DNA of 64,000 nt, taken from positions 186,001 to 250,000 of the forward strand of contig JAPDFW010000082.1 in assembly GCA_028826165.1 (NCBI GenBank), written 5' to 3'. Shown here one piece after another: positions 1-18,500 of this stretch. Position 1 is the stretch's first letter. Each line of letters begins with the position of its first letter. Made by a program: the position numbers and the translations under genes. The DNA is from Anaeramoeba ignava BMAN (taxonomy: Eukaryota; Protista; Anaeramoebae). The notes beneath the pieces are model-generated. The model searched no databases. It was not told the origin of the DNA and saw only the letters and a list, made by a program, of their open reading frames with translations.

Positions 1-318
1 AATAATTTTGAAAATATAAAATCAATTCGAATTACAAAACCTAAAGCAAACACAAACACAAACATAAATATAAACACGAATTCAAACACAAACACAAACA
101 CAAATTTAAATTTAAATATTAATTCAAATTTAAATTCAAATTTAAATATAAATACTAATTCAAATTATAATTCAAATTATAATCCAAATTCAAATTATAA
201 TTTTATTGCAAATAAAATTTCAAAATCGAATTGTAATTTAGATTTAAATCTAGAATTCAGTCCAAATATCAAAAAACCTTTGTTATTTAATAAAACTCCC
301 TTATTTTTAAGGGATTGA
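1..318 (+). CDS. 3' end of a gene entering from the left edge; Asn-rich low-complexity C-terminus
   Basis: Frame 1 is open from position 1 (NNFENIKSIRITKPKANTNTN...KKPLLFNKTPLFLRD) to TGA at 316-318. Confidence 0.6.
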   Translation, partial: NNFENIKSIRITKPKANTNTNININTNSNTNTNTNLNLNINSNLNSNLNINTNSNYNSNYNPNSNYNFIANKISKSNCNLDLNLEFSPNIKKPLLFNKTPLFLRD

Positions 319-547
319 ACAAAATATGAAAAAAAAATTTATTTTTGTTTTAGATTTATTTTCTTTTTTAAAAAAAAATTCAAAATAAAAATTAAATTCA
401 AATTGTTTTTAATTAATTTTTTAAATTATTTATTTGAAATGAAAATCCACTTTTTATTATTATTTACAATTTTTTTTTCCTTTTTTTCCTTTTTTTCCTT
501 TTTCATTTTTTTCATTTTTTTCATTTTTTTTTTATCATTTTATTTAA

Positions 548-874
548 ATGAATCAAAAACAACAAAAAGTCTCATACAAAGAGCAAAGAAAACAAAAAGA
601 AAGTTTACTTGCTGAAGAAAGAAAAAAATGGGTTATTTTTTTTGCAAAACGGTTAATGACTAATCAAGACCAATCAACAAATTTATTTGATCCAAATTAT
701 CAATTTCAAAATACTACAAATTTTTCTAATAATTATTATTATGATCCAAATCAAAATCAGTCATTTAATCCAAATCAAAATCAAAATCAATTTCAAAAAT
801 CCAAATATAAATCAAAATCAATTTCAAAATCAAAATCAAATCAAAATCAAAATCAATTTCAAAATCAAAATTAA
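548..874 (+). CDS. Hypothetical protein whose unique N-terminus runs into an NQFQNQ-coding repeat; true 3' end uncertain
   Basis: ATG 548 follows TCATTTT motifs and gives about 70 aa of complex sequence (MNQKQQKVSYKEQRKQKESLLAEERKKWVIFFAKRL...). The downstream repeat has many frame breaks. Confidence 0.4.
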   Translation: MNQKQQKVSYKEQRKQKESLLAEERKKWVIFFAKRLMTNQDQSTNLFDPNYQFQNTTNFSNNYYYDPNQNQSFNPNQNQNQFQKSKYKSKSISKSKSNQNQNQFQNQN

Positions 875-2210
875 AATTAATTTCAAAATCAATTTCAAAA
901 TCAAAATCAATTTCAAAATCAATTTCAAAATCAAAATCCAAATCAAAATCAAAATCAAAATCAATTTCAAAATCAATTTAAAAATCAAAATCAATTTCAA
1001 AATTTAAATTAAATTCAAAATCAATTTAAAAATCAAAATCAATTTCAAAATTTAAATCAATTTCAAAATCAATTTCAAAATCAAATCCAAATCAAAATCA
1101 AAATCAAAATCAAAATCAATTTCAAAATCAAAATCAAAATCAATTTCAAAATCAAAATCAATTTCAAAATCAATTTAAAAATCAAAATCAATTTCAAAAT
1201 CAAAATTAAAATTAATTTCAAAATCAATTTCAAAATCAATTTCAAAATCAATTTCAAAATCAATTTCAAAAATCAATTCAAAAATCAATTCAAAATCAAT
1301 TTCAAAATCAATTTCAAAATCAAAATCAATTTCAAATTCAAAATACAAAATTAATTTCAAAATCAAAAATCAATTTCAAAATCAAAATCAATTTCAAAAT
1401 CAAAATCAAAATTAATTTCAAAATCAAAAATCAATTTCAAAATTTAAATCAAATTCAAAATATAAATCAATTTCAAAATAAATTTCAAATACAAAATCAA
1501 TTTAAAAATCAATTTCAAAATCAAAATCAAAATCAAAATCAAAATCAATTTCAAAATCAAAATTAAAATTAATTTCAAAATCAATTTCAAAATCAATTTA
1601 AAAATAAATTCAAAATCAATTCCAAAATAGAAATCAATTTCAAAATTAAATTTCAAAATCAATTTAAAAATCAATTCAAAATCAATTTCAAAATTAATTT
1701 CAAAATCAAAAATCAATTTCAAAATCAAATCAATTTCAAAATCAAAATTTCAAAAATACAAAAATTAATTTCAAAATCAAAAATCAATTTCAAAATCAAA
1801 TTTAAATCAATTTCAAAATCAATTTCAAAATCAAAAATCAATTTAAAATCAATTTCAAAATCAATTTCAAAATCTCAATTTCAAAATTAAATATAAATTA
1901 AAATGATAAATCAATTTCAAAATCAAAATCAAAATACAAAATTAATTTCAATTTCAATTTCAATTTCAAAATTTAAATCAAATTCAAAATACAAAATCAA
2001 TTTCAAAATAAATTTAAAAATCAAAATCAAAATCAAAATCAAAATTAATTCCAAAATTAAAATAAAAATCAATTTCAAAATCAAAATACAAAATTAATTT
2101 AAAAATCAATTTAAAAATCAATTTCAAAATCAAAATCAAAATCAAAATCAATTTCAAAATCCAAATCAAAATCAATTTCAAAATTTAAATCAATTTCAAT
2201 TTCAAAATTA
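770..2210 (+). repeat. Degenerate AATCAATTTCAA / AAAATC tandem repeat
   Basis: 6/12/18-bp periodic units are directly visible. Confidence 0.9.
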
Positions 2211-2487
2211 AAATGGAAAAAAAAATGATAAACAAAAATTGCTTTTTTTTGTTTTGTTTTAATCAAAAAATAATTTAGATTTTGTTTTGGATTATTTTTT
2301 TTATTTTTTTTAATTGAAAAAAAAAAAGGAGAAATAAAATAAAATAAACAAAAAGAAAAAAGGGGAATAAAATTCAAGAACAACAAATTCAAAAAAAAAA
2401 GAAAAAAACATCAAAAATCATTTTTTTTTTAATTTGTTTCTTTTTTTTTTTTAATTAAATTTAAAATTAAATCAAAATTAAATCAAA

Positions 2488-5340
2488 ATGGGAAGAACAG
2501 GAGGAAGAAGTCATGGAAGAAGTCATGGAAGAAGTCATGCAAGAAGTTCTGGATTTAGAAGTCATGCAAGAAGTTCAGGAATAAGAAGCTCAGGAATAAG
2601 AAGTTCAACAACAAGAAGATCAGGAATAGGAACTACAAGAAGAACCGCATTCGGTACAAGTTCAACTTCACATCGTTATCATCATTCAAGTACAAGTTCA
2701 AGAAGAAAACGGCATGTAACTTCACTTTCAAGAAGATCAGGTTTTACAACTACTTTTAGTTCAACAAAAAAACCAATAAGTCATTCAAGTAATTCAAATC
2801 AGTTAAGATTATTTACTTCAACTACTTCAACTACTTCAAATACTTCAAATACTCCAAATATAACTTTATTTTCAAACTCAAATTCAATTTCAAACACAAA
2901 TACTTCTCAAGTTAATACAAATCCTGACCTTTTAGAAGAATATAGTCGTATTTCTTATAGTTATTTGGATCCTACAACAAAAAATATTGTTATTGAATTG
3001 AAACCTCCAAGAATTTTATATTATAAAATTGTCCAATTCAGATTGCAACAACAACAAAATCAACAACAAATTCAACCTCAACAAATTTTTAATCCTTTGA
3101 CTGGTGTTTTTGAGACTATAAACATGGGCGTTCAACAGCCTCAATTCCAACAACAACCACCTCAATATCAGCAACCACCTCAATATCAACAACCTCAAGA
3201 ACAATTCCAACAACCTCCACCTCAATATCAACAGCCTCCGCCTCAATATCAACAACCTCAAGAACAATTTCAATTTAAATCTCCTCAAAAAAATATTCAA
3301 GACATGACCCAAGAAGAATTCTTAAAATATCAAGAAGAACGTCAACGTGAAATTCAAAAAACAAGAGAAAAGCAACAAATCGAAAATGAGAAACAAAAAC
3401 AACAAGAACAGCAAAATATGCAACAAAATCAATTTAATTTTGAAACAAAACCATTTGGACAAGAATCACAACCAAATTATGCTTTTGATTTCACAAACAA
3501 TAAACCAACTTATAATTCTATTCCACAAAATAATCCTGTTAAACCTCCATTACAACCTCCACAACCTCAATTCCAACCTCCAAAACCTCCATTACAACCT
3601 CCACAACCTCAATTCCAACCTCCAAAACCTCCATTTCAACCTCAACAACCTCAATTTCAACCTCAACAACCTCAATTTCAACCTCAACAACCTCAATTCC
3701 AACCTCAACAACCTCAATTTCAACCTCAACAATCTAATGATAGTATTTCTCAAGATCCAGAAATTGATAATTGTCTTAAATTTATTACAACAGCAAATAT
3801 TGTTGTTCAAAATGGATCTGGTTTTTTTACAGAAGCGAAAAAGAGTTATTTCAATGTATTTTATTAAAATTGATTTAAAAATTGATTTAAATATTGATTT
3901 AAATATTTAATTAAAAATTGATTTAAAAATTGATTTAAAAATTGATTTAAATATTTATTTAAAAATTGATTTAAAAATTGATTTAAAAATTTATTTAAAT
4001 ATTGACTTAAATATTTATTTAAAAATTGATTTAAAAATTTATTTAAAAATTGATTTAAATATTGATTTAAATATTGAATTAAATATTGATTTAAATATTG
4101 ATTTAAAAATTGATTTAAAAATTGAATTAAATATTGATTTAAAAATTGATTTAAATATTGATTTAAATATTTATTTAAAAATTTATTTAAATATTTATTT
4201 AAAAATTGATTTAAAAATTTATTTAAAAATTTAATTAAAAATTTATTTAAAAATTGATTTAAAAATTTATTTAAAAATTTATTTAAAAATTTATTTAAAA
4301 ATTGATTTAAAAATTGATTTAAATATTTGATTTAAAAATTTATTTAAAAATTGATTTAAAAATTGATTTAAATATTTATTTAAAAATTGATTTAAATATT
4401 GATTTAAATATTGATTTAAATATTGATTTAAATATTGATTTAAAAATTTATTTAAAAATTGATTTAAAAATTGATTTAAAAATTGATTTAAATATTTATT
4501 TAAAAATTTATTTAAAAATTTATTTAAAAATTTATTTAAAAATTGATTTAAATATTGATTTAAAAATTTATTTAAAAATTGACTTAAATATTTATTTAAA
4601 AATTGATTTAAAAATTGACTTAAATATTTATTTAAAAATTGATTTAAAAATTGATTTAAAATTGATTTAAATATTTATTTAAATATTTATTTAAAAATTG
4701 ATTTAAATATTTATTTAAATATTTATTTAAATATTGATTTAAAAATTGATTTAAATATTGATTTAAAAATTGAATTAAAAATTTATTTAAAAATTGATTT
4801 AAATATTTATTTAAAAATTTATTTAAAAATTGACTTAAATATTTATTTAAAAATTGATTTAAATATTGATTTAAAAATTGATTTAAAAATTGATTTAAAA
4901 ATTGATTTAAAAATTGATTTAAAAATTGATTTAAATATTGACTTAAAAATTTATTTAAAAATTTATTTAAAAATTGATTTAAAAATTTATTTTCTTCAAA
5001 GATCTTTTTAGTTACAAGGGATTCTGATGATCCAACATGGTTAGTTCGTTCAGCAAAATATAATGCAATGAAAGAACCAACTTGGAATATGTCAGTAGTA
5101 ACAAAAATTTCAGGATCATTTAGTGATGAAGTTTTATTATTTGAAATGATGAAACCAAATATTTTTTCTAAAGATGAATTAGTTGGAGCTTTTGAAATTC
5201 CATTAACACGACAATCAATAGGACAACAAGAAAATCTACAGTTATCATTAACAGAAGGACAAGTAAATTGTACGATTTTAATCACACAAGCAGAAGTTCC
5301 TCAAAATCAAAACCAAGCACAACTTTGCACTATTTTTTAA
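2488..5340 (+). CDS. PY-motif / C2-domain / CaaX protein, paralogue A (exons 2488-3855, 5002-5340)
   Basis: Intron GTATTT 3856 to AAG 5001 joins KSYFN|IFLVTRD in frame. C2 signature W-N...FSKDELVGAFEIPL; four PPQY motifs; ends CTIF*. Confidence 0.8.
3865..4990 (+). repeat. Intronic 12-bp satellite (ATTGATTTAAAA variants)
   Basis: Directly visible; fills the intron of paralogue A. Confidence 0.95.
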
Positions 5341-5349
5341 AAAAAAGTG

Positions 5350-5680
5350 CAATTTCCTTATTTCCTTTTATTCTCTTTTATTCTCTTTTATTTCCTTTTA
5401 TTTCCTTTTATTCTCTTTTATTCTCTTTTATTTCCTTTTATTCTCTTTTTATTTCTTTTTATTTGCTTTTATTTCCTTTTATTTCCTTTTATTTCCTTTT
5501 TATTTGCTTTTATTTCCTTTTTATTTCCTTTTATTTCCTTTTATTTCCTTTTATTTCCTTTTATTTCCTTATTTTCTTTTATTCTCTTTTATTCTCTTTT
5601 TATTTCCTTTTATTTTCTTTTATTTCCTTTTTATTTGCTTTTGTTCTCTTTTTATTTTATTTTCTTTTATTCTATTCTTT
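5350..5680 (+). repeat. Pyrimidine-rich TTTTATTTCC-type repeat downstream of paralogue A
   Basis: 9-11-bp units are directly visible. Confidence 0.85.
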
Positions 5681-5821
5681 CTACACTCAAATCAAAATCA
5701 TTAAAAAGACGAATTCTTTTTTAATTTTTAATTTTAATTTTTAATTTTTAATTTGGATTTTCATTTTTCATTTTGATTATTTTATCTTATTTTTTAAACA
5801 CAAAAATAATATTCAATTAAT

Positions 5822-8081
5822 ATGCTTTTAAGAAGAGCTGGACCAAGAGCAATTACAATTCAAAACAGAATCAAAAGTTCCGTTCTTAGAGGCAATCAAA
5901 TAGTTGTATTTTTAAACCCACCAAAAAAAATACAAGGCAAGTTAATTGAGTATAAAAAACAACAACAACCACAAAAAGAGCAAGAACAATTACAACGGCG
6001 AGTTGGTTTACAACAACAAGCAATGTTGATGGCAAACACACAACCAACAAATATCAACGAACAATTCGAACTTGGAAAGAAAATAATATCACAAAATCCA
6101 AATATACCAAAAAGACAACAGATCCTAATGCAAAAGCAACTAGAAAGAGCACAAATGAAAGAAGCAAAAACAGGAGAAATGAGCAAACAATTTGAACAGA
6201 TGAAACAAATGATGGAAACACCTCAAATGCAACAACAATTTGAACAGATGAGACAAATGATGGAAACACCCCAAATGCAGCAACAATTTGAACAGATGAG
6301 ACAAATGATGGAAACACCTCAAATGCAACAACAATTTGAACAGATGAGACAAATGATGGACTCTCCACAAATGCAACAAAATTTTGCTAATATGAGAGAA
6401 CAATTGAATACTTTGCCGAATAATAACCCCCAAACAGAAGAACAAAAACGTCAGCGAGTGGAGCAACTTCAAGCACAATTAACAGGTCAACAAACAGTTT
6501 TCCAAAAGCAAATGAGCACCCAACCAAGTTATACTACTCAAACACAAACCTACACAACAACATTCCAACAACAACAACCTCAACAACAACAACAACAACA
6601 AACAAACTATTCTTTTCAATCAAATCCTCCTGATTATACAACTGATTTACCAAATTATACAACTTCTTATGAACAACCTAAACAAACAAACTATTCTTTT
6701 CAATCAAATCCTCCTGATTATACAAGTCAACCTCCTGATTATACAAATTCATATCAGCAGCAATCTTTTCAACAACCTCAGCAATTTCAACAACAACCTC
6801 CTGATTATTCTACTCAATCTCAACAAAATACTTTGAGTGATAAAAATATAGATCCTCAAGTTGATCTTTTTATGAAATTCCAAACAAAATTGCAACTTAT
6901 AATTGCTAATGGATCTGGACTTATGACTTCTTCAAGTAAAACATATTTCAAGGTATAAATTTAAATCAAAATCAAAATTAAAATTAAAATTAGAATTAAA
7001 TTCAAAATCAAAATCAAAATCAAAATCAAAATCAAAATTAAAATAAATCAAATTCAAAATCAAAATCAAAATTAAAATCAAAATTAAAATCAAAATCAAA
7101 ATCAAAATCAAAATCAAAATTAAAATCAAAATCAAAATCAAAATCAAAATCAAAATCAAAATCAAAATTAAAATCAAAATCAAAATTAAAATAAAAATCA
7201 AAATAAAAATCAAAATTTAAATTAAAATTAAAATTAAAATTAAAATCAAAATCAAAATCAAAATCAAAATCAAAATCAAAATCAAAATTAAAATCAAAAT
7301 CAAAATCAAAATCAAAATTAAAATCAAAATCAAAATCAAAATCTAAATTAAAATAAAAATCAAAATTAAAATCAAAATTTAAATCAAAATCAAAATCAAA
7401 ATCAAAATCAAAATCAAAATTAAAATTAAAATTAAAATCAAAATCAAATTCAAAATCAAAATCAAAATTCAAAATCAAAATCAAAATCAAAATCAAAATC
7501 AAAATCAAAATCAAAATCTAAATTAAAATCAAAATCAAAATTAAAATCAAAATCTAAATTAAAATCAAAATCAAAATTAAAATCAAAATCAAAATCAAAA
7601 TCTAAAATTAAAATTTAAATCAAAATCAAAATCAAAATCAAAATTAAAATTAAAATCAAAATCAAAATCAAAATTAAAATTAAAATTAAAATTAAAATCA
7701 ATAAAATTAAAATCAAAATCAAAATCAAAATCAAAATCAAAATCAAATATTTAGGTTTTCTTAATAAGTGAAGACTCGACAGAACCAGAATTTATTATTC
7801 AAACAGATAAATTTAAATCAATGAAAGATCCAAGTTGGGATTTAGAAACTCTTGTTACAATTCCAGGAGATTTTACAGATGAAATTTTCCAGTTCGAAGT
7901 AATGAAAGCAAAATCATTTGGAAAAGATCAATTATTAGGAGCATTTCAAATTGCCTTAAAAACTGATGTTAAAAACAGTCAAATTGAAAGAAAAATTTCA
8001 TGTGGAAATGGAACAGTTTTTTGCAAATGGATAATTCAAACAGAAGAAGCTCCACAACAACAAAATTGCAGAATTTTCTAA
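5822..8081 (+). CDS. PY-motif / C2-domain / CaaX protein, paralogue B (exons 5822-6952, 7755-8081)
   Basis: Intron GTATAA 6953 to TAG 7754 joins TYFK|VFLISED. Four QFEQM(K/R)QMM repeats, PPDY/LPNY motifs, C2 signature, ends CRIF*. Confidence 0.8.
6960..7748 (+). repeat. Intronic AAAATC/AAAATT hexamer satellite
   Basis: Directly visible. Confidence 0.95.
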
Positions 8082-8256
8082 AAGAAAAAAAAGAAATCTT
8101 CATTTTAATTTATTTCTTTTTTTTTAATTTCTAATTTTTAATTTTCCAAAAAAAAAAAACAATTCAAAAAGTCAAATTGAATCAACCAAAATCAAAAACA
8201 AATTTTTTCATTTTTTTTTTCATTTTTCTTCAATTCAAATTTTTTCTTTTTCTTTT

Positions 8257-10226
8257 ATGAAAAAACTTTTTTCAAAATCAAATTCAAAATCAAAATCAAA
8301 TTCAAAATCAAATTCAAAATCAAATTCAAAATATCAAAATCAAAATCAAAATATAAATCAAAATCAAATAATCCAAATTTAAAAGAAACTTATAAATCCT
8401 TTTTTGCTAAAAATCCTGATTCTTTCGTTTATAATCCTCGTGTTTTAAATGCATGGAGAAAATCAAAAACAAATCAAATTTTTATTCGATTAAATCCAGT
8501 TAAAAATAATTTATCCAGTTTATTTCAAGCACATCATAAACTGAAAAATGAAAATCAATCAGAAAACCAAAACCAATTTAAATCAATCGGTTTGTTTGAA
8601 TTACATAAGCAACTCAAACAAGAAAATCAATTTGGAAACGGTGGAAACAATTCATCAAAAAACCAAATACTTAAACTTAAATTAGAGCAATTAAGAAAAG
8701 CTAGGGAAAAAGAAGTATTAGAAAAAAAGAATCAATCTAATTCAAATCAATTTGGAAATGATGAAAAAGATTCACCAAAAAGAAAATCATTTAAAAATAA
8801 GTTAAAAGAATTGAGAAATATTAAGAAACAACAATTACTAGAAAGAAAGAATCAATCTAATCCAAATCAATTTGAGAATGGAGAACAAGTACCAAAAAGA
8901 AAATCATTTAAAAATAAGTTAAAGGAATTGAGAAATATTAAGAAACAGGAATTATTAGAAAGAAAGAATCAATCTAATTCAAATCAATTTGGAAATGATG
9001 AAAAAGATTCACCAAAAAGAAAATCATTTAAAAATAAGTTAAAAGAATTGAGAAATATTAAGAAACAGGAATTATTAGAAAGAAAGAATCAATCTAATTC
9101 AAATCAATTTGAGAATGGAGAACAAGTACCAAAAAGAAAATCATTTAAAAATAAGTTAAAAGAATTGAGAAAAGCTAGGGAAAAAGAAGTATTAGAAAAA
9201 GAAAATCAAAACCCAAAAAAATATGATGGAAACGAAAATAAGGAAACCTTTCAATTTGAAAATCAATTAGATTCACATAATTTACAAAATTTTGGTTTGG
9301 ATCCAAATATCACATCTAATGATTTAAATCAATATCCTATTGGTCCTATATCACTTGAACAGACTTTGGAACAACAAAATCAACAAAGTTTACAACAAGA
9401 AATAACTTACACAAGCAACTCACAAAATTACATTAATGATTTTCAAGGCTATATGAATACTTTTGACCAACCTAAACAAACAAGCTATCTAAATCAATCA
9501 ATCAATTCTCAAAATCATTCATTTCATCAGCCAACAAATTTAAACTCTCCTCAAAAAGATAACCGCAGCATTGAATCGCAAAATCAAATTTTTCAATATG
9601 ACTTGGTGAATTCCTCTTCACTTTTCGAACAAACTCAACAAAATATTTTCCAACAAGAATCACCATCACTTTTTTCAGATTCTCTTTCATTGTTCCAAAA
9701 TACTGAAGAAAAAACAAATATTACACAACCAACTTTTACATTTGATGAAAGTTTTGGAGTTAGAACAGAAACAATAATGAATTTATTAATCATTTTTGAT
9801 AAAGATTTAATGGATATTCGACAAAATACACAATTTAAGGTAAATTAAATGAATAAATTAAATCAACAAATCAAATTTTAATATTTCGGAAACTTGAAGT
9901 TTTCACTAGTTTCACAAATAACAGGTCAAAAAGGGTTTCTTATTAACTCAAAGAAATTTAAGCAATTTAAAGAATCGAATTTGGATTTAAGTGTTGAAAT
10001 ATCAATTCCTGGTGATTTTATTGATGAAATTTTAAGTATTACTTTTATTGGATTTATGGACATAACCTTTCAAGAAGAATTGGGAGAAATCCAAATTCCA
10101 CTCAAAACTGAAACAAAGAACATTCAAATAGAAAGAGAATTTACAATTTCAAGAAGTAAAGTAATTTGTAAATGGATCACAGAAACAAAAGAAATCCCAA
10201 TTTTATTGGATTTTGAAATGGTTTAA
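8257..10226 (+). CDS. Divergent C2-domain paralogue C with no PY motifs or CaaX; probable frameshift near 8330 (intron 9840-9899)
   Basis: The frame upstream of ORF 8592 encodes PRVLNAWRKSKTNQIFIRLNP, homologous to the family N-terminal motif. The nearest ATG (8257) is in another frame. Same intron position (TQFK|FSLVSQ). Internal ~36-39-aa PKRKSFKNKLKELR repeats. Confidence 0.6.
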
Positions 10227-10355
10227 ACACAATATTTACATTTTAAAATTACTGGATAATATTTCCAAAATAAAATAAAAAATAAAATAAAATAAACTTT
10301 CCATTTTTTTTCTATTTTTGCTTTTTTCATTTTTTTTTTTCACCTTTCTAATAAA

Positions 10356-11699
10356 ATGGCTTTCAGAAAAGAAACACCAAAACATCCTCGATTAGGGCCT
10401 GCATGGACTGATACAATAACTAGAAAGATTCAAATTCCATTATATCAACCTGAACCATTAAAATCTAAAGTTTATAATTTCAGTGTTCAAAGAAGACAAC
10501 AACTAAACCAACAAAGAAGAGAAGAACAATTAGCACAACAAGAAACAGTAACAGCTCAGCAAAACCTTCCACAAATAATTACAAATGTTCAAACAAATCC
10601 TCAACAAAACAGAGTTGGATTAAACAGTCTATTTGCAAAAAGAACAAACCAAAATCCAATTCAAATTCAAAATCAAATTCAAATTCAAAATAACAACTTC
10701 CAACAACAAAATCAAATTCAATCACAAACCGAAGAAGAAAAAAAAAGGATGGAATATTTACAAATGAAATTAGGAAAAAATCAAGATACACAAGGAATAC
10801 AACAAACAAATTATTCATTTGAATCAAATCCACCTGATTATACAAGTGATTTAACAAATTATACAAATTCATATCAACAACAACCACAACAAACAAATTA
10901 TACATTTGAATCAAATCCACCTGATTATACAAATGAACCACCAAATTATACATCTTTATATCAACAACAACCTCAACAACCCAAACAAACAAATTATTCA
11001 TTTGAATCAAATCCACCTGATTATACAACCTCATATCAACAACAACAACAACCACAAATCAATTTTCAACAACAAATCAACTTTCAACAACAACAAGTTA
11101 ATTTACAACAAACACAAATTCAAACTTCCTTTTCTCAAGAAAATACAAATTCTGGAAATGAAAATATATTAAGAGAACCTGTTTGTGATGATCCACAAGT
11201 TGATTTTTGTTATAGATTTCACACAGTTATGAATCTTATGATTGAAAAAGGAATTGGAATTTCAGATTCATCTTCAAAAACTTATTTTAAAGTAAATTAA
11301 TTTCAAATTTAAATTTTATAAAATAATTTTATTTAAAAAAATTAATTTAATCTTTAATATATTTTTTAGTTCTTCTTACTTGCTCCAGAAATAAAACAAC
11401 CTGAATTTATTATCAAATCTGAAAGTTATAAATCAATGAAAAACCTTATTTGGAATTTGGAAGTTGAAATTACAATTTTAGGAGATTTTACTAATGAAAT
11501 TCTTCAAATTGAAATTATGAAACAAAACACTTTTTCAAAAGATGTATTTCTTGGAGCTTTTCAAATTCCATTAAAAGCAACTTCTAAAAATCAAGAAATT
11601 CAACAAGAAATCCCATTAACAAAAGGAAAAGTAACTTGTAAATGGTTAGTTCAAACAAAACCAAATCCTGAAAAAAAAGAACAGTGCAGGATTTTCTAA
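10356..11699 (+). CDS. PY-motif / C2-domain / CaaX protein, paralogue D (exons 10356-11291, 11370-11699)
   Basis: 78-nt GT-AG intron joins TYFK|FFLLAPE; TNYSFESNPPDY repeats; ends CRIF*. Confidence 0.85.
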
Positions 11700-11997
11700 A
11701 GAATCAAAAAACAAAAAAGAACAAATTTTAATTTATATTTTATTTTTGTTTTTTGATTATTTTTGATCCACTTTTTTATTTTAATCATAAAACAAAAGAA
11801 AAAAAAATCAAAGGAAACTGAAGGAAAACTTTTAATTCTTTCTTTCTTTCTTTCCAAACTTTTCTTTCTTTAAAAAAAAATAATTCTTCTTTTCATTTGA
11901 TGTTCACAATTTTCTTTTCAATTTTTTTTTAAATTAAAAAAAAAAAAGCAAAAAAAATCATTTTTCATTTTTCATTTTTTTTCACCTTTCTAATAAA

Positions 11998-13449
11998 ATG
12001 GCTTTATCAAAGAAACAAATAGAAGAAAATCCTCGACTAGGACCTGTATGGAGTGATAAAAATACTAAAGGTGTTCATATTCGATTAAATCAACCTGAAC
12101 CATTAAAATCCAAATTTACTGAATTTAGCACTCAAAGAAGAAAAGAACTAAATCAACAAAGAAGAGAAGAAAGATTAGCACGACAAGAAACAAAAACAGC
12201 AGAACAAAACCTTCCACAAATAATTACAAATGTTCAAACAAATCCTCAACAAAACAGAGTTGGACTAACCAATCTATTTGCAAAAAAACAAAATCAAAAT
12301 CCAATTCAAATTCAAAATCAAAATCCAATTCAAATTCAAAATAACAACTTCCAACAACAAAATCAAATTCAATCACAAACCGAAGAAGAAAAGAAAAGAA
12401 TGGAATATTTACAAATGAAATTAGGAAAAAATCAAGATACACAAGGAATACAACAAACAAATTATACAAGTGATTTACCAAATTATACAAATTCATATCA
12501 ACAACAACCTCAACAACCTCAACAAACAAATTATTCATTTGAATCAAATCCACCTGATTATACAAGTGATTTACCAAATTATACATCTTTATATCAACAA
12601 CAACCTCAACAAACAAATTATTCATTTGAATCAAATCCACCTGATTATACAAATGATTTACCAAATTACACAAATTCATATCAACAACAACCTCAACAAC
12701 CCAAACAAACAAATTATTCATTTGAATCAAATCCACCTGATTATACAACCTCATATCAACAACAACCACAACAACCACAAATTAATTTTCAACAAAACCC
12801 TCAACAACAAATTAATTTTCAACAACAAATCAACTTTCAACAACAACAAGTTAATTTACAACAACCACAAATTCAAACTTCCTTTTCTCAAGAAAATACA
12901 AATTCTGGAAATGAAAATATATTAAGAGAACCTGTTTGTGATGATCCACAAGTTGATTTTTGTTATAGATTTCAAACAGTTATGAATCTTATGATTGAAA
13001 AAGGAATTGGAATTTCAGATTCATCTTCAAAAACTTATTTTAAAGTAAATCAATTCCAAATTTAAATTTTATAAAATAATTTTATTGAAAAAAATTAATT
13101 TAATCTTTAATATATTTTTTAGTTCTTCTTACTTACTCCAGAAATAAAACAACCTGCATTTATTATTAAATCTGAAAGTTATAAATCAATGAAAAACCTT
13201 ATTTGGAATTTGGAAGTTGAAATTACAATTAGAGGAGATTTTACTAATGAAATCATCCAAATTGAAATTATGAAACAAAACACTTTTTCAAAAGATGTAT
13301 TTCTTGGAGCTTTTCAAATTCCATTAAAAACAACTTCCAAAAATCAAGAAATTCAACAAGAAATCCCATTAACAAAAGGAAAAGTAACTTGTAAATGGTT
13401 AGTTCAAACAAAACCAGTTCCTGAAAAAAAAGGATGCACAATTTTCTAA
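11998..13449 (+). CDS. PY-motif / C2-domain / CaaX protein, paralogue E (exons 11998-13044, 13123-13449)
   Basis: 78-nt intron; C2 exon near-identical to D and F; ends KKGCTIF*. Confidence 0.85.
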
Positions 13450-13755
13450 AAGAACCAAAAAACAAAAAAGAACAAACTTTGATTCATAATTTATTTTTGT
13501 TTTTTGATTATTTTTGATCCACTTTTTTATTTTAATCATAAAACAAAAGAAAACAAAACGAAAATAAAAGAAAACTGAAAGAAAACTTTTCTTTCTTTCT
13601 TTCTTTCTTTCCAAAATTTAATTCTTTAAAAAAAAATAATTCTTCTTTTCATTTGATGTTCACAATTTTCTTTTCAATTTTTTTTTAAATTAAAAAAAAA
13701 AAAGCAAAAAAAAATCATTTTTCATTTTTCATTTTTTTTTCACCTTTCTAATAAA

Positions 13756-15355
13756 ATGGCTTTTAGAAGAGAAATACCAAAACATCCTCGATTAGGACCT
13801 GTATGGACTGATAAAAATACTAAAGGTGTTCATATTCCATTATATCCACCTGAACCATTAAAATCCAAATTTAATGAATTCAGTTTTGAAAGAAGAAAAG
13901 AACTAAACCAACAAAGAAGAGAAGAAAGATTAGCACGACAAGAAGAAAAAACAGCAGAACAAAACCTTCCACAAATAATTACAAATGTTCAAACAAATCC
14001 TCAACAAAACAGAGTTGGACTAATCAATCTATTTGCAAAAAAAACAAATCAAAATCCAATTCAAATTCAAAATCAAAATCCAATTCAAATTCAAAATAAC
14101 AACTTCCAACAACAAAACCAAATTCAATCACAAACCGAAGAAGAAAAGAAAAGAATGGAATATTTACAAATGAAATTAGGAAAAAATCAAGATACACAAG
14201 GAATACAACAAGCAAATTATACATTTGAATCAAATCCACCTGATTATACAAGTGATTTACCAAATTATACAAATTCATATCAACAACAACCTCAACAACC
14301 TCAACAAACAAATTATACATTTGAATCAAATACACCTTATTATACAAGTGATTTAACAAATTATACAAATTCATATCAACAACAACAACAACAACCTCAA
14401 CAAACAAATTATTCATTTGAATCAAATCCACCTGATTATACAAGTGATTTACCAAATTACACAAATTCATATCAACAACAGCAACAACAACCTCAACAAA
14501 CAAATTATTCATTTGAATCAAATCCACCTGATTATACAAGTGATTTACCAAATTACACAAATTCATATCAACAACAACAACCTCAACAACCAACAATTTT
14601 TCAACAAAACCCTCAACAAAAACAAATTAAATATCAACAAACACAAAAACTTAGGTTACAAGAAGCAAAAGTTAATTTACAAGAAGTCAAGGTTAATGTA
14701 CAAGAAGCAAAAGTTAAATTACAAGAAGTCAAAATTAATTTACAAAAACCACAAATCAATTTACAACAAACACAAATTCAAACTTCCTTTTCTCAAGAAA
14801 ATACAAATTCTGGAAATGAAAATATATTAAGAGAACCTGTTTGTGATGATCCACAAGTTGATTTTTGTTATAGATTTCAAACAGTTATGAATCTTATAAT
14901 TGAAAAAGGAATTGGAATTTCAGATTCATCTTCAAAAACTTATTTTAAAGTAAATCAATTCCAAATTTAAATCTCATAAAATAATTTTATTGAAAAAAAT
15001 TAATTTAATCTTTAATATATTTTTTTAGTTCTTCTTACTTGCTCCAGAAATAAAACAACCCGAATTTATTATTAAATCTGAAAGTTATAAATCAATGAAA
15101 AACCTAATTTGGAATTTGGAAGTTGAAATTACAATTAGAGGAGATTTTACTAATGAAATTCTTCAAATTGAAATTATGAAACCAAACACTTTTTCAAAAG
15201 ATGTATTTCTTGGAGCTTTTCAAATTCCATTAAAAACAACTTCTAAAAATCAAGAAATTCAACAAGAAATCCCATTAACAAAAGGAAAAGTAACTTGTAA
15301 ATGGTTAGTTCAAACAAAACCATTTCCTGAAAAAAAAGGATGCACAATTTTCTAA
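13756..15355 (+). CDS. PY-motif / C2-domain / CaaX protein, paralogue F (exons 13756-14949, 15029-15355)
   Basis: 79-nt intron; extra (L/V)QE(A/V)KVN heptad repeats; ends KKGCTIF*. Confidence 0.85.
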
Positions 15356-15548: not shown

Positions 15549-18500
15549 TCAATTTTCTTTTGAATTTTCATTTAAATTTTCTTTTAAATTTTCATTTAAA
15601 TTTTCATTTAAGTTTTCATTTAAATTTTCATTTGAATTTTCATTTGAGTTTTGTTTTGAATCTGAATTAATTTGCAAAGGTGGAGGAATCGATTTAGGTC
15701 TTGGTGGCTTTTCTTTTAAAAATAAAGGTGGAGGACTTGATTTAGGTTTTGGAGGTTTTTCTTTTAATGGTAAAGGTGGAGGACTTGATTTAGGTTTTGG
15801 AGGTTTTGCCTTTAAAAATAAAGTTGGAGGAGTTGATTTAGGTTTTTGAGGTTTTTGCAAAATATTTTGATTTTGATTTTGATTTTGATTTTGATTTTTT
15901 TCATATTTGTTGTATCCATATTTATATCTATATTCATCTTCATATTTATATGCATTTGGATATTCATATTCATCATTATATTCATCATTATATTCATCAT
16001 TATATTCATCATTATATTCATCATTATATTCATCATTATATTCATCATTATATTCATCATTATATTCATCATCATCGTAATCATAATCATAATCATAATC
16101 TCTTCCAACATTTTCAAATGAAAAGGTTTCATTTTCAGTTTCAGGATTCTATTTTAAAAAACAAGAAAAAAAAAAAGATGAAAGAAAATGTAAAAAATTT
16201 TGAAAATTTGAAATAATACACTCAATTCTGTTTGATTAAAATTAGAATTATCAACATCTTCATTTTGAGTTAAATTTGTAGATTCTTCGTTATCTTCTAA
16301 GAATTCGGTATTCAATGGAAGTAAATAATTGGCAATTTCCCCAATCATTGTTGATTGTAATTGATTATTTTGATAAACCTCTATTTGCACAAAATTTATC
16401 CAATCTTCATTATCTGTTTTATTCAATAAACATAAAAAAATCATTTTGGATTTTTGTTTGATTTTCTAATTTTTTTTGTGAATGTTTTTACTGTTTAAAA
16501 TTTGCTTGACTTTTTGGTTTTGATCATATAGTTTAATAATTTCATTTGAAATTACGAAAAAATGATAAAGAAATCCTGAACTCCTATTTTGATTGGATTA
16601 AATGGGGAATTATTAAAGATTTAAGAACTCAAAAAAAAAATGAAAAATTTAAGCATAATTTTACTCTTTGCTCTTAACTACACAACAAGAAATAATAGTT
16701 TCAATAAGATGAGTTTCAGTAAATAAATGATCAATAAAAATTTCTAGGTTTGAATTTAGGATTTCGATTATGATTTGAGAAACTTGGAGATGTAAAAAAG
16801 TGTTATTAGGGAATTTTTCAAAAATATCCTTCAAAATTAAAAATAAATAGAGATTAGATTAAATAAAAAGAAAACCAAGAAAATTTTTTGTGTTTGAATA
16901 AAAGTTCTTTTACAATAAAATAGGAAAAAATTTTCTTTTCAATAAGAAGCTTTTGTAAAGGAAGATAATCAATACACAAAAGTGTGTCAAGTAAATGAAT
17001 CACAAGAATTTTTCTTTTTCCAAAAGGTTCAAATTCTCCGTGAGATAATTTCATTGTTGGCTCTGGAATCTTTAATTGAATTCAATTGAATTAAATTAAA
17101 TTAAATTGAAATGAATTGAATTAAATTGAATTGAATTAAATTAAATTAAATGAAATTGAAATGAATTAAATTAAATTGAATTGAATTGAAATGAATTAAA
17201 ATAAATTAAAATAAATTAAATTGAATTAAATTGAATTAAATTGAAATGAATTAAATTGATTTATGAATTAAATTAAATTAAATTGAATTGAATTGAATTG
17301 AATTGAATTGAATTGAATTTTATTACAAATAATTGATTTATGAATTCATCCATATTTTTCATTATAAATTCAAGAGAAAATGGAATTTTTTCATTTTCTT
17401 GAAAAATTATTGATTTGGTTTGAGTTGATAAAATTCCTACTAAAACAGAAATTCTGTTTATATCCATTTTGTTTGAAGACTAAAGAAAAAAAAATCAGAA
17501 TTGATTAAAATAATTGATGAAAGAAAATAGTACTTTTTTGGCTAGAATATTAAAAAGATTTCCTAGCAATTCCTCATCTTCCATTTTCTTCTTTAGTGAT
17601 GTATCATATTCTAAATGCAAACTAAATAAACTTTGTAAACATCTTGAAGTATTTTCAAAATTCTGGAATGAATAAATTAAATATTTGGTTTTTTTTGTTA
17701 AAAAAATGGGAAGCAAAATGAGAATAAATAACATGAGAATAAATAATGGAAGTAAAAGACAAACATTTTGGTCTTGAGTTTGAAGATCATCTATTAATTT
17801 GGAAAGGAGATTATTTCTGTCAAAATACTTTGAATCAAAAAGAAAATTTTTATTTAAAAAAAAAGATGAATATGATATTTTTAAGAAATGTTGATAATGA
17901 ATACTTCTGTAAGGTTTTGAGAAAATGAACCAACACTTAAATAGATAATTTTTTCCAAAACATCAGCACAATTTGTATCAGAAATATGTAAAAGTAATTT
18001 GTTAAGAATTTGGTCATTTTCTAATAAATAATTAATTGTCTTTTTAAATCAAAAAAAAAAGGAATTTTTAAAATAATCTCCACAATAATAATAATAAAGA
18101 TGAATTTTTCAAATCAAATACTTGTTCATCTTTTCTACGAAATTGAATTAAAATTGTTTTTGCGAAATTGCTTGAAAAAATTGGGTTTAAAGGAGGAGAA
18201 TTATTGAGAAATGAGAATATTTGATCCATTAAACTTTTTTCATTTGCAATAGTTTCAATAATTTGGAAATTTTCTGAAGTGATAACTAAACTTGAAATAA
18301 ATGGATACCTATTTTTATATAAATTTTTATATAATTTTAATTTTAAATTTGAATTTGAATTTGATTTTGATTTTGATTTTGAATTTGAATTTGAATTTGA
18401 ATTTGAATTTGAATTTGAATTTGAATTTGAATTTGATTTTGATTTTGATTTTGATTTTGATTTTGATTTTGATTTTGATTTTGATTTTGATTTTGAATTT

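Follow-up and report, generated by a model that had tools for sequence, protein, structure and literature searches.

NDFIP1/2 and Bsd2 are membrane-attached proteins that carry several PPxY or LPxY (PY) motifs on a flexible cytosolic region. They are held in the membrane by three transmembrane helices and act with a ligase that combines WW and HECT domains (WW-HECT ligase). In the arrestin-related trafficking adaptors (ARTs, or α-arrestins), PY motifs and lineage-specific expansion are found together with an arrestin domain and a ligase partner. Angiomotin, Expanded and PTPN14 are membrane PPxY scaffolds that hold YAP/Yorkie by its WW domains. K-Ras4B represents a different principle, namely a CaaX lipid that needs a second, adjoining membrane contact, which in this protein is a polybasic stretch. 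Here we describe six tandem genes (A–F) of Anaeramoeba ignava BMAN whose products share features with all of these systems. The genes lie in a window of 64,000 nucleotides (GenBank assembly GCA_028826165.1, contig JAPDFW010000082.1, positions 186,001 to 250,000 of the forward strand); positions given without a contig are those of this window.

Like NDFIP1/2 and Bsd2, the A. ignava proteins display several PPxY/LPxY motifs on a region that looks flexible. However, a predicted CaaX lipid and a C2 domain would take the place of the transmembrane helices, and no WW-HECT ligase was seen. With the ARTs they share PY motifs and lineage-specific expansion, whereas neither an arrestin domain nor a ligase partner was found. 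As in K-Ras4B, we propose that the CaaX lipid is assisted by a second contact, which would here be a whole C2 domain with basic loops. The reading that we favour, as plausible but tentative, is that of an orphan, tandemly duplicated family of peripheral-membrane scaffolds with a prenyl-plus-C2 anchor, whose PY motifs recruit non-ligase WW proteins. Its nearest functional analogy is with angiomotin, Expanded and PTPN14, although these have no sequence relationship to the A. ignava family, for which WW capture is a proposal.

The six paralogues are arranged head to tail, all on the plus strand, between 2488 and 15355. Searching for GT..AG pairs that connect each gene's long first frame with its short second one yielded exactly one phase-0 GT-AG solution per gene (6/6), positioned after the homologous codons YF[KN]. 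The resulting gene models are as follows.

Gene A, 2488–5340, plus strand: exon 1 2488–3855, exon 2 5002–5340; predicted intron of 1146 nt, donor GTATTT, acceptor AAAG; N-terminal extension of ~150 aa rich in Ser/Arg/Thr, variant N-terminal motif, four PPQY, P/Q-rich stretch, C2, CTIF end.
Gene B, 5822–8081, plus strand: exon 1 5822–6952, exon 2 7755–8081; intron of 802 nt, donor GTATAA, junction as in the public model P0002; variant N-terminal motif, four 16-aa Met/Gln-rich repeats, four PPDY and LPNY, C2, CRIF end.
Gene C, 8388–10226, plus strand: N-terminal motif 8388–8530, exon 1 to 9839, exon 2 9900–10226; intron of 60 nt, donor GTAAAT; four 40-aa Lys/Glu-rich repeats, proline-free degenerate Tyr-rich unit, C2 with altered loops, FEMV end.
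Gene D, 10356–11699, plus strand: exon 1 10356–11291, exon 2 11370–11699; intron of 78 nt, donor GTAAAT; N-terminal motif, three PY units (three PPDY, PPNY), C2, CRIF end.
Gene E, 11998–13449, plus strand: exon 1 11998–13044, exon 2 13123–13449; intron of 78 nt, donor GTAAAT; N-terminal motif, three PPDY and three LPNY, C2, CTIF end.
Gene F, 13756–15355, plus strand: exon 1 13756–14949, exon 2 15029–15355; intron of 79 nt, donor GTAAAT; N-terminal motif, four 32-aa PY units, helical heptad insert, C2, CTIF end; equals the public protein P0001.

P0001 (506 aa, NCBI M0811_09559, named C2 domain-containing in UniRef) corresponds to gene F spliced as predicted, with ...SSSKTYFK in front of the junction and FFLLAPEIK... 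behind it. The public model P0002 (1044 aa) contains the same intron junctions within B and C. The initial annotation, made from the letters of the window, had described six head-to-tail paralogues with a shared N-terminal motif, a variable Q-rich middle, one intron at the same codon and a C-terminal C2 domain. Each of these elements was recovered, and the intron that it had predicted agrees with P0001 for F and with P0002 for B and C. In what follows, P0001 and P0002 are the whole spliced proteins used, and genes A–E were otherwise analysed exon by exon.

The C-terminal exon folds as a C2 domain, on which Pfam, an AlphaFold2 model and Foldseek agree. In A, B, E and F, exon 2 matches PF00168 at model positions 47–104, and in spliced P0001 the match extends over positions 20–104. 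Relative to the cut-off of 22 bits, the scores are 27.9 for exon 2 of E (E-value 2.9e-6), 26.4 for F, 25.5 for P0001 and 22.5 for B. Exon 2 of A lies just below the cut-off with 21.6 bits (E-value 2.6e-4), and exon 2 of C gives no PF00168 match. AlphaFold2 was run on an alignment (A2) of P0001 residues 359–506 with the exon-1 tails and second exons of A–E as separate rows, and returned an eight-strand β-sandwich with a predicted local distance difference test (pLDDT) value of 70.8. Foldseek retrieved 116 matches of this model in the PDB at E≤0.001, and all top matches listed are C2 or C2-like domains. The best template modelling (TM) score, 0.62, belongs to the C2 domain of NEDD4L (2nsq), which also ranked first in a profile search of PDB sequences (E 4.6e-4), and the best Foldseek E-values belong to the Trichomonas vaginalis C2 proteins 9zk0/9zk4. 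These domains have the same fold as the A. ignava C2, but identity is just 14–19%, and the Ca ligands have become Lys or Asn in A. ignava. Moreover, the CaaX end of the A. ignava family occurs in no other C2 protein among the matches listed.

In the alignment with 2nsq_A, SDPY stands opposite SKTY, and FDEN..RDD opposite MKxN..SKD, so that three of the five canonical Ca-ligand positions are occupied by Lys, Lys and Asn. Ca-dependent C2 domains of the synaptotagmin/PKC type have five acidic ligands in loops 1 and 3; here K-x-N replaces D-x-D, and two acidic positions are present in D–F and fewer in A–C. The ligand loss noted in the initial annotation is therefore borne out. Because of these replacements, the Ca-independence that it had drawn from them is a reasonable expectation.

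Directly before the stop codon, A, E and F read CTIF, B and D read CRIF, and C reads FEMV. The five CTIF/CRIF ends, as initially annotated, combine a Cys at position –4, an aliphatic a2 residue, an accepted X residue and a true C-terminus; this combination is missing from C. The CaaX box is kept in A and B, though exon 2 of these genes is only 39–49% identical to that of D–F. The residues before the Cys vary, and no polybasic run precedes it in A or B. The genome encodes the likely modifying enzymes. Three prenyltransferase β-subunit loci were found, on contigs C1, C65 and C137. The first matches the β-subunit of geranylgeranyltransferase-I (GGTase-I; E 2.8e-30, 8rdx_B/1n4p_B) and the second that of farnesyltransferase (E 1.7e-42, 1jcq_B); the third is taken to be a Rab prenyltransferase from its sequence.

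The disordered middle of the proteins carries the PY motifs. [PL]PxY counts are 4 in A (all PPQY), 5 in B, 0 in C, 4 in D, and 6 each in E and F, and none of 5000 composition-preserving shuffles per gene reached the observed count in any PY-bearing gene. Their density is 10.5 per 1000 aa, compared with 0.49 in 45,076 residues of other long open reading frames (ORFs) of the same genome, a ~21-fold difference. The initial annotation had given the motifs as PPQY in A and as PPDY and LPNY in B, D, E and F. This holds for A, B, E and F, but D has no LPNY (three PPDY, one PPNY, with a copy that reads LTNY) and C has no PY motif at all. The enrichment statistics overstate the independence of the motifs, because these sit in tandem DNA repeats of 87–96 nt with 86–95% matches, located as follows.

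14206–14581, plus strand: PY-unit tandem repeat in F, 96 nt in 3.9 copies with 95% matches, encoding NY[ST]FESNPPDYTSDLPNYTNSYQQQ.
6554–6754 (B), 10799–11075 (D) and 12511–12779 (E), plus strand: homologous PY arrays from the repeat scan.

Within these arrays, a 22-residue unit, NYSFESNPPDYTSDLPNYTNSY, is the best-conserved segment between B and D/E/F. Between B and F it is identical at 19/22 positions, with five synonymous and three conservative codon differences, whereas in the C2 exon these two genes share 49% identity and have a ratio of nonsynonymous to synonymous divergence (dN/dS) of ~0.7. Since a disordered segment thus outdoes the neighbouring C2 domain in conservation and at the same time shows synonymous divergence, the unit appears to be a linear motif under constraint, and not a tract left by recent conversion. 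Pro8 is kept in 11/12 units and Pro9 in 12/12, across the split between B and D/E/F, and the aromatic spacing Y2, F4, Y11, Y18, Y22 is kept in all of them. The unit was not found elsewhere in the genome. In the full-length AlphaFold2 model of P0001, residues 76–284, PY units included, have pLDDT values of 25–45; the PY-bearing linker therefore looks disordered in the model, which fits a disordered display of linear motifs. Outside the C2 domain, disorder is predicted for everything but the N-terminal module and some helices.

To identify candidate partners, the whole 42.8 Mb genome was scanned in six frames with the Pfam WW and Pfam HECT models. The WW scan gave nine candidates, six of them significant, at four loci on contigs C81, C35 (two), C58 and C85 (two). 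The HECT scan gave 29 matches on 19 contigs. Genome-wide, none of the WW candidates (0/9) is close to any of these HECT matches. The sole contig with both is C35, on which they are 486 kb apart, and the best four HECT genes, with 1256–2612 codons, are HUWE1-like giants without a WW pattern. All C2-WW-HECT families have been placed in Opisthokonta and Apusozoa (Grau-Bove et al. 2013, PMC3673628), and given this confinement the absence of WW-HECT ligases from Anaeramoeba is to be expected. Near-identical HECT C-termini on contigs C119/C115 and C116/C125 suggest duplication or assembly haplotigs.

The genome's clearest class-I (PPxY-binding) WW domain, with 52.8 bits and as the only one with a clear class-I pattern, is located at C81:360136-360225 and belongs to a public protein of 289 aa, P0017. 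This protein combines a coiled coil rich in Glu/Arg with a stretch rich in Ser/Thr/Gln and ends in the WW domain; the database sequences closest to it are fragments of WW regions from fungal Rsp5/NEDD4. NCBI labels it 'transcriptional coactivator yorkie', a name that evidently goes back to nothing but the WW domain; neither a TEAD-binding region nor any other Hippo-pathway feature was seen in it. A complex prediction with the WW region of P0017 (230–289) and a PY unit of P0001 (146–185) scored 0.08, a value that speaks neither for nor against binding. A second candidate is a WW-WW-RhoGAP protein encoded at C35:542672-544974, with a near-identical copy at C85:17621-17840. Over the stretch seen, the protein is identical on the two contigs, which may reflect a recent duplication or an assembly haplotig. 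A third, on C58, has a WW domain and a weak DIL match. The PY motifs may still bind WW domains, which are located here in non-ligase proteins.

As far as current data go, the family appears to be an orphan, in agreement with its initial description as lineage-specific. Single-exon and profile searches of the genome returned these six copies only, and in protein searches P0001 was the sole match, both for exon 1 of E and for its own C2 part. A profile search of 1.84 billion representative proteins recovered P0001, P0002 and 14 weak matches, and no relative from outside the cluster. Of these weak matches, the four inspected are ordinary proteins that bear Asp and have repeated C2 domains, and the other ten are 900–3300 residues long with several matching stretches each. 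We found no description of the combination of C2, CaaX and PPxY in the literature searched, nor of the locus tag, and the Anaeramoeba genome paper (PMC11550330) makes no mention of C2, NEDD4, HECT, WW or prenylation. The parts, i.e. the C2 domain, the CaaX anchor and the PY motifs, are familiar, but their combination was not found in any protein outside the cluster.

The mechanism with the best support combines a prenyl-plus-C2 anchor with a disordered linker, on which a multivalent Tyr/Pro motif is under constraint. A CaaX box with a terminal Phe favours GGTase-I. The Cys of C[TR]IF would thus be prenylated and, because the last residue is Phe, most likely geranylgeranylated. The adjoining C2 domain, with Lys/Asn at three of the five Ca-ligand positions, would provide a Ca-independent second membrane contact and replace the polybasic stretch of other CaaX proteins. 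From this anchor, the long disordered Q-rich linker would show two to four copies of the 22-residue Tyr-rich unit with PPDY and LPNY (PPQY in A), and its PY motifs would bring WW-domain proteins to that membrane. As the genome has no WW-HECT ligase, these readers would be non-ligase WW proteins, with P0017, the WW-WW-RhoGAP protein of C35/C85 and the WW protein on C58 as candidates. Such a function would amount to recruitment or sequestration and not to ubiquitin-ligase adaptation.

If this model holds, PY–WW signalling would act as a code for membrane recruitment in a eukaryote with no history of NEDD4-type ligases, and the family would be a natural example of a C2 domain acting as the 'second signal' for a prenyl anchor. 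A more specific version, HECT-free recruitment in which geranylgeranylated, Ca-independent C2 scaffolds capture P0017 or the WW-WW-RhoGAP protein at a specific membrane, is doubtful at present. If true, the principle on which angiomotin and Expanded retain YAP/Yorkie would have been invented independently in a lineage distant from animals and fungi. The A. ignava genome is known for its expanded membrane traffic, and such a system may be connected with the elaborate endomembranes and the symbiosomes of Anaeramoeba.

Several points weigh against the scaffold model or limit it. The WW scan has limited sensitivity for a domain of 31 residues, and the absence of a WW-HECT ligase also depends on the completeness of the assembly. 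Recent tandem duplication made most of the PY copies, which leaves about three or four independent origins and not 25. In C, and partly in A, the aromatic spacing persists at the homologous place in the absence of the prolines. It is moreover the whole 22-residue unit that is conserved and not the PY cores alone, and the constrained feature may thus be a Tyr motif that does not address WW domains. Finally, dN/dS of the C2 exon is 0.24–0.43 among D/E/F and ~0.6–1 in older pairs (NG86), which would indicate fast or relaxed evolution, but deserves little weight since dS is unreliable at 24% GC.

The main alternative takes up the aromatic spacing. It retains the prenyl and C2 anchor but treats the Tyr-rich unit as an aromatic sticker in a Q/N-rich low-complexity linker, for self-association or condensation at the membrane, or as the ligand of another module, for instance after Tyr phosphorylation, with PPxY being incidental to a composition rich in P, Q and Y. 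We regard this as quite possible. It would explain an aromatic pattern that is present in all units and also in the proline-free unit of C, as well as the replacement of motif prolines by Thr in recent copies (LTNY in D and F, TPYY in F). A linker that is predicted to be disordered and owes its multiplicity to tandem DNA repeats suits a sticker as well. Against it, Pro8 and Pro9 persist between B and D/E/F alongside synonymous change. Gene A, furthermore, has four PPQY in an unrelated repeat context, and the genome does contain a class-I WW domain.

That the cluster is young and drifting, with little or no function, and that recent duplication and gene conversion left its open frames and motifs behind, seems improbable. 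D, E and F are indeed recent copies, and their introns are as alike (92–96%) as their second exons (94–97%). The dN/dS of the C2 exon nears 1 for A versus D–F, gene C looks damaged (no ATG, no CaaX box, altered C2 loops), and no relatives exist outside the cluster in the searches described above. Yet six frames of ~420–570 codons have stayed open despite a GC content of 24%, at which stop codons are frequent. The splice sites are intact in 6/6 genes, and the deepest splits, with synonymous divergence, have left the CaaX box and the PY unit in place.

Very improbable, lastly, is the proposal of the initial annotation that these are prenylated multivalent adaptors recruiting a NEDD4/Rsp5-type WW-HECT ligase to membrane cargo in the manner of ARTs or NDFIP/Bsd2: PPxY/LPxY motifs are enriched in an accessible region, NEDD4L provides the best sequence match of the C2 domain among solved structures and HECT ligases are numerous, but the genome scans show no WW-HECT ligase, the very outcome named beforehand as decisive against it, the top HECT genes are of the HUWE1 type, C2-WW-HECT proteins are reported from Opisthokonta and Apusozoa only (PMC3673628), and Pfam finds C2 only, with neither an arrestin fold nor NDFIP-type membrane spans.

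Gene C appears to stand apart from the other five. Its frame is open from ~8181 and has no in-frame ATG before the N-terminal motif; it nevertheless stays open for >520 codons in this 24% GC genome. The prolines of the unit, the CaaX box and the start codon are lacking together, and the C2 loops are altered. P0002 fuses B to C via a GT-AG intron of ~408 nt (~7977–8384) and thereby drops the last 34 residues of B, including CRIF. Either the annotation is in error here or a fusion transcript with two C2 domains really exists. Our models correct the public annotation, in which only F is modelled separately and B and C are fused; protein searches returned no public models of A, D or E.

In F the N-terminal motif reads PRLGPVWTDKNTKGVHIPLYPPEP; it can be aligned across 6/6 genes, with weaker variants in A, B and C. 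In the full-length AlphaFold2 model of P0001, the N-terminal module (residues 11–60) reaches pLDDT values of 72–81 and consists of short strands followed by a long helix. The motif has no match in Pfam, a genome search at E≤1 gave paralogues in D, E and F only, and the ESM Atlas yielded only generic long-helix matches without a usable look-alike. Gene A alone has an N-extension of ~150 aa (2488–2940) that is rich in Arg, Ser, His and Thr (GRSHGRSHGRSH...) and is built from 12-, 15- and 27-nt repeats at 2498–2632, with a resemblance to RS-like low-complexity sequence. The linkers contain further tandem repeats that are private to each paralogue (6186–6384 in B, 8712–9209 in C, 14656–14766 in F). 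They encode a 16-aa unit, QFEQMRQMMETPQMQQ, in four copies in B, a Lys/Glu-rich 40-aa unit in four copies in C, and the 7-aa heptad QEAKVNL in F, which forms a helix in the AlphaFold2 model (residues 286–327).

Repeats have also shaped the introns of A and B. These share their codon position with the introns of C–F (60–79 nt) and have been enlarged by microsatellite arrays to 1146 and 802 nt, respectively. The array in A (3866–4992) comprises 94 copies of the 12-nt unit AAAATTGATTTA, and that in B (6963–7747) 131 copies of the 6-nt unit AAATCA. A spurious minus-strand ORF of 209 aa (4656–5285) is a reading of the array in A. GC content in the window ranges from 4 to 33% per 2 kb.

In a first look at the Ras family (PF00071), the genome yielded 1014 candidates; 150 of these were scored, all with E≤1e-29. 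The candidates often occur in dense tandem arrays, as at C101:161-179 kb, C60:775-794 kb and C61:108-235 kb. Directly downstream of F, on the minus strand at 15549–15860, lies a Pro-rich ORF with KPPKPKSSPPPL[PF]LKEK repeats, a possible ligand of the profilin, SH3 or class-II WW type.

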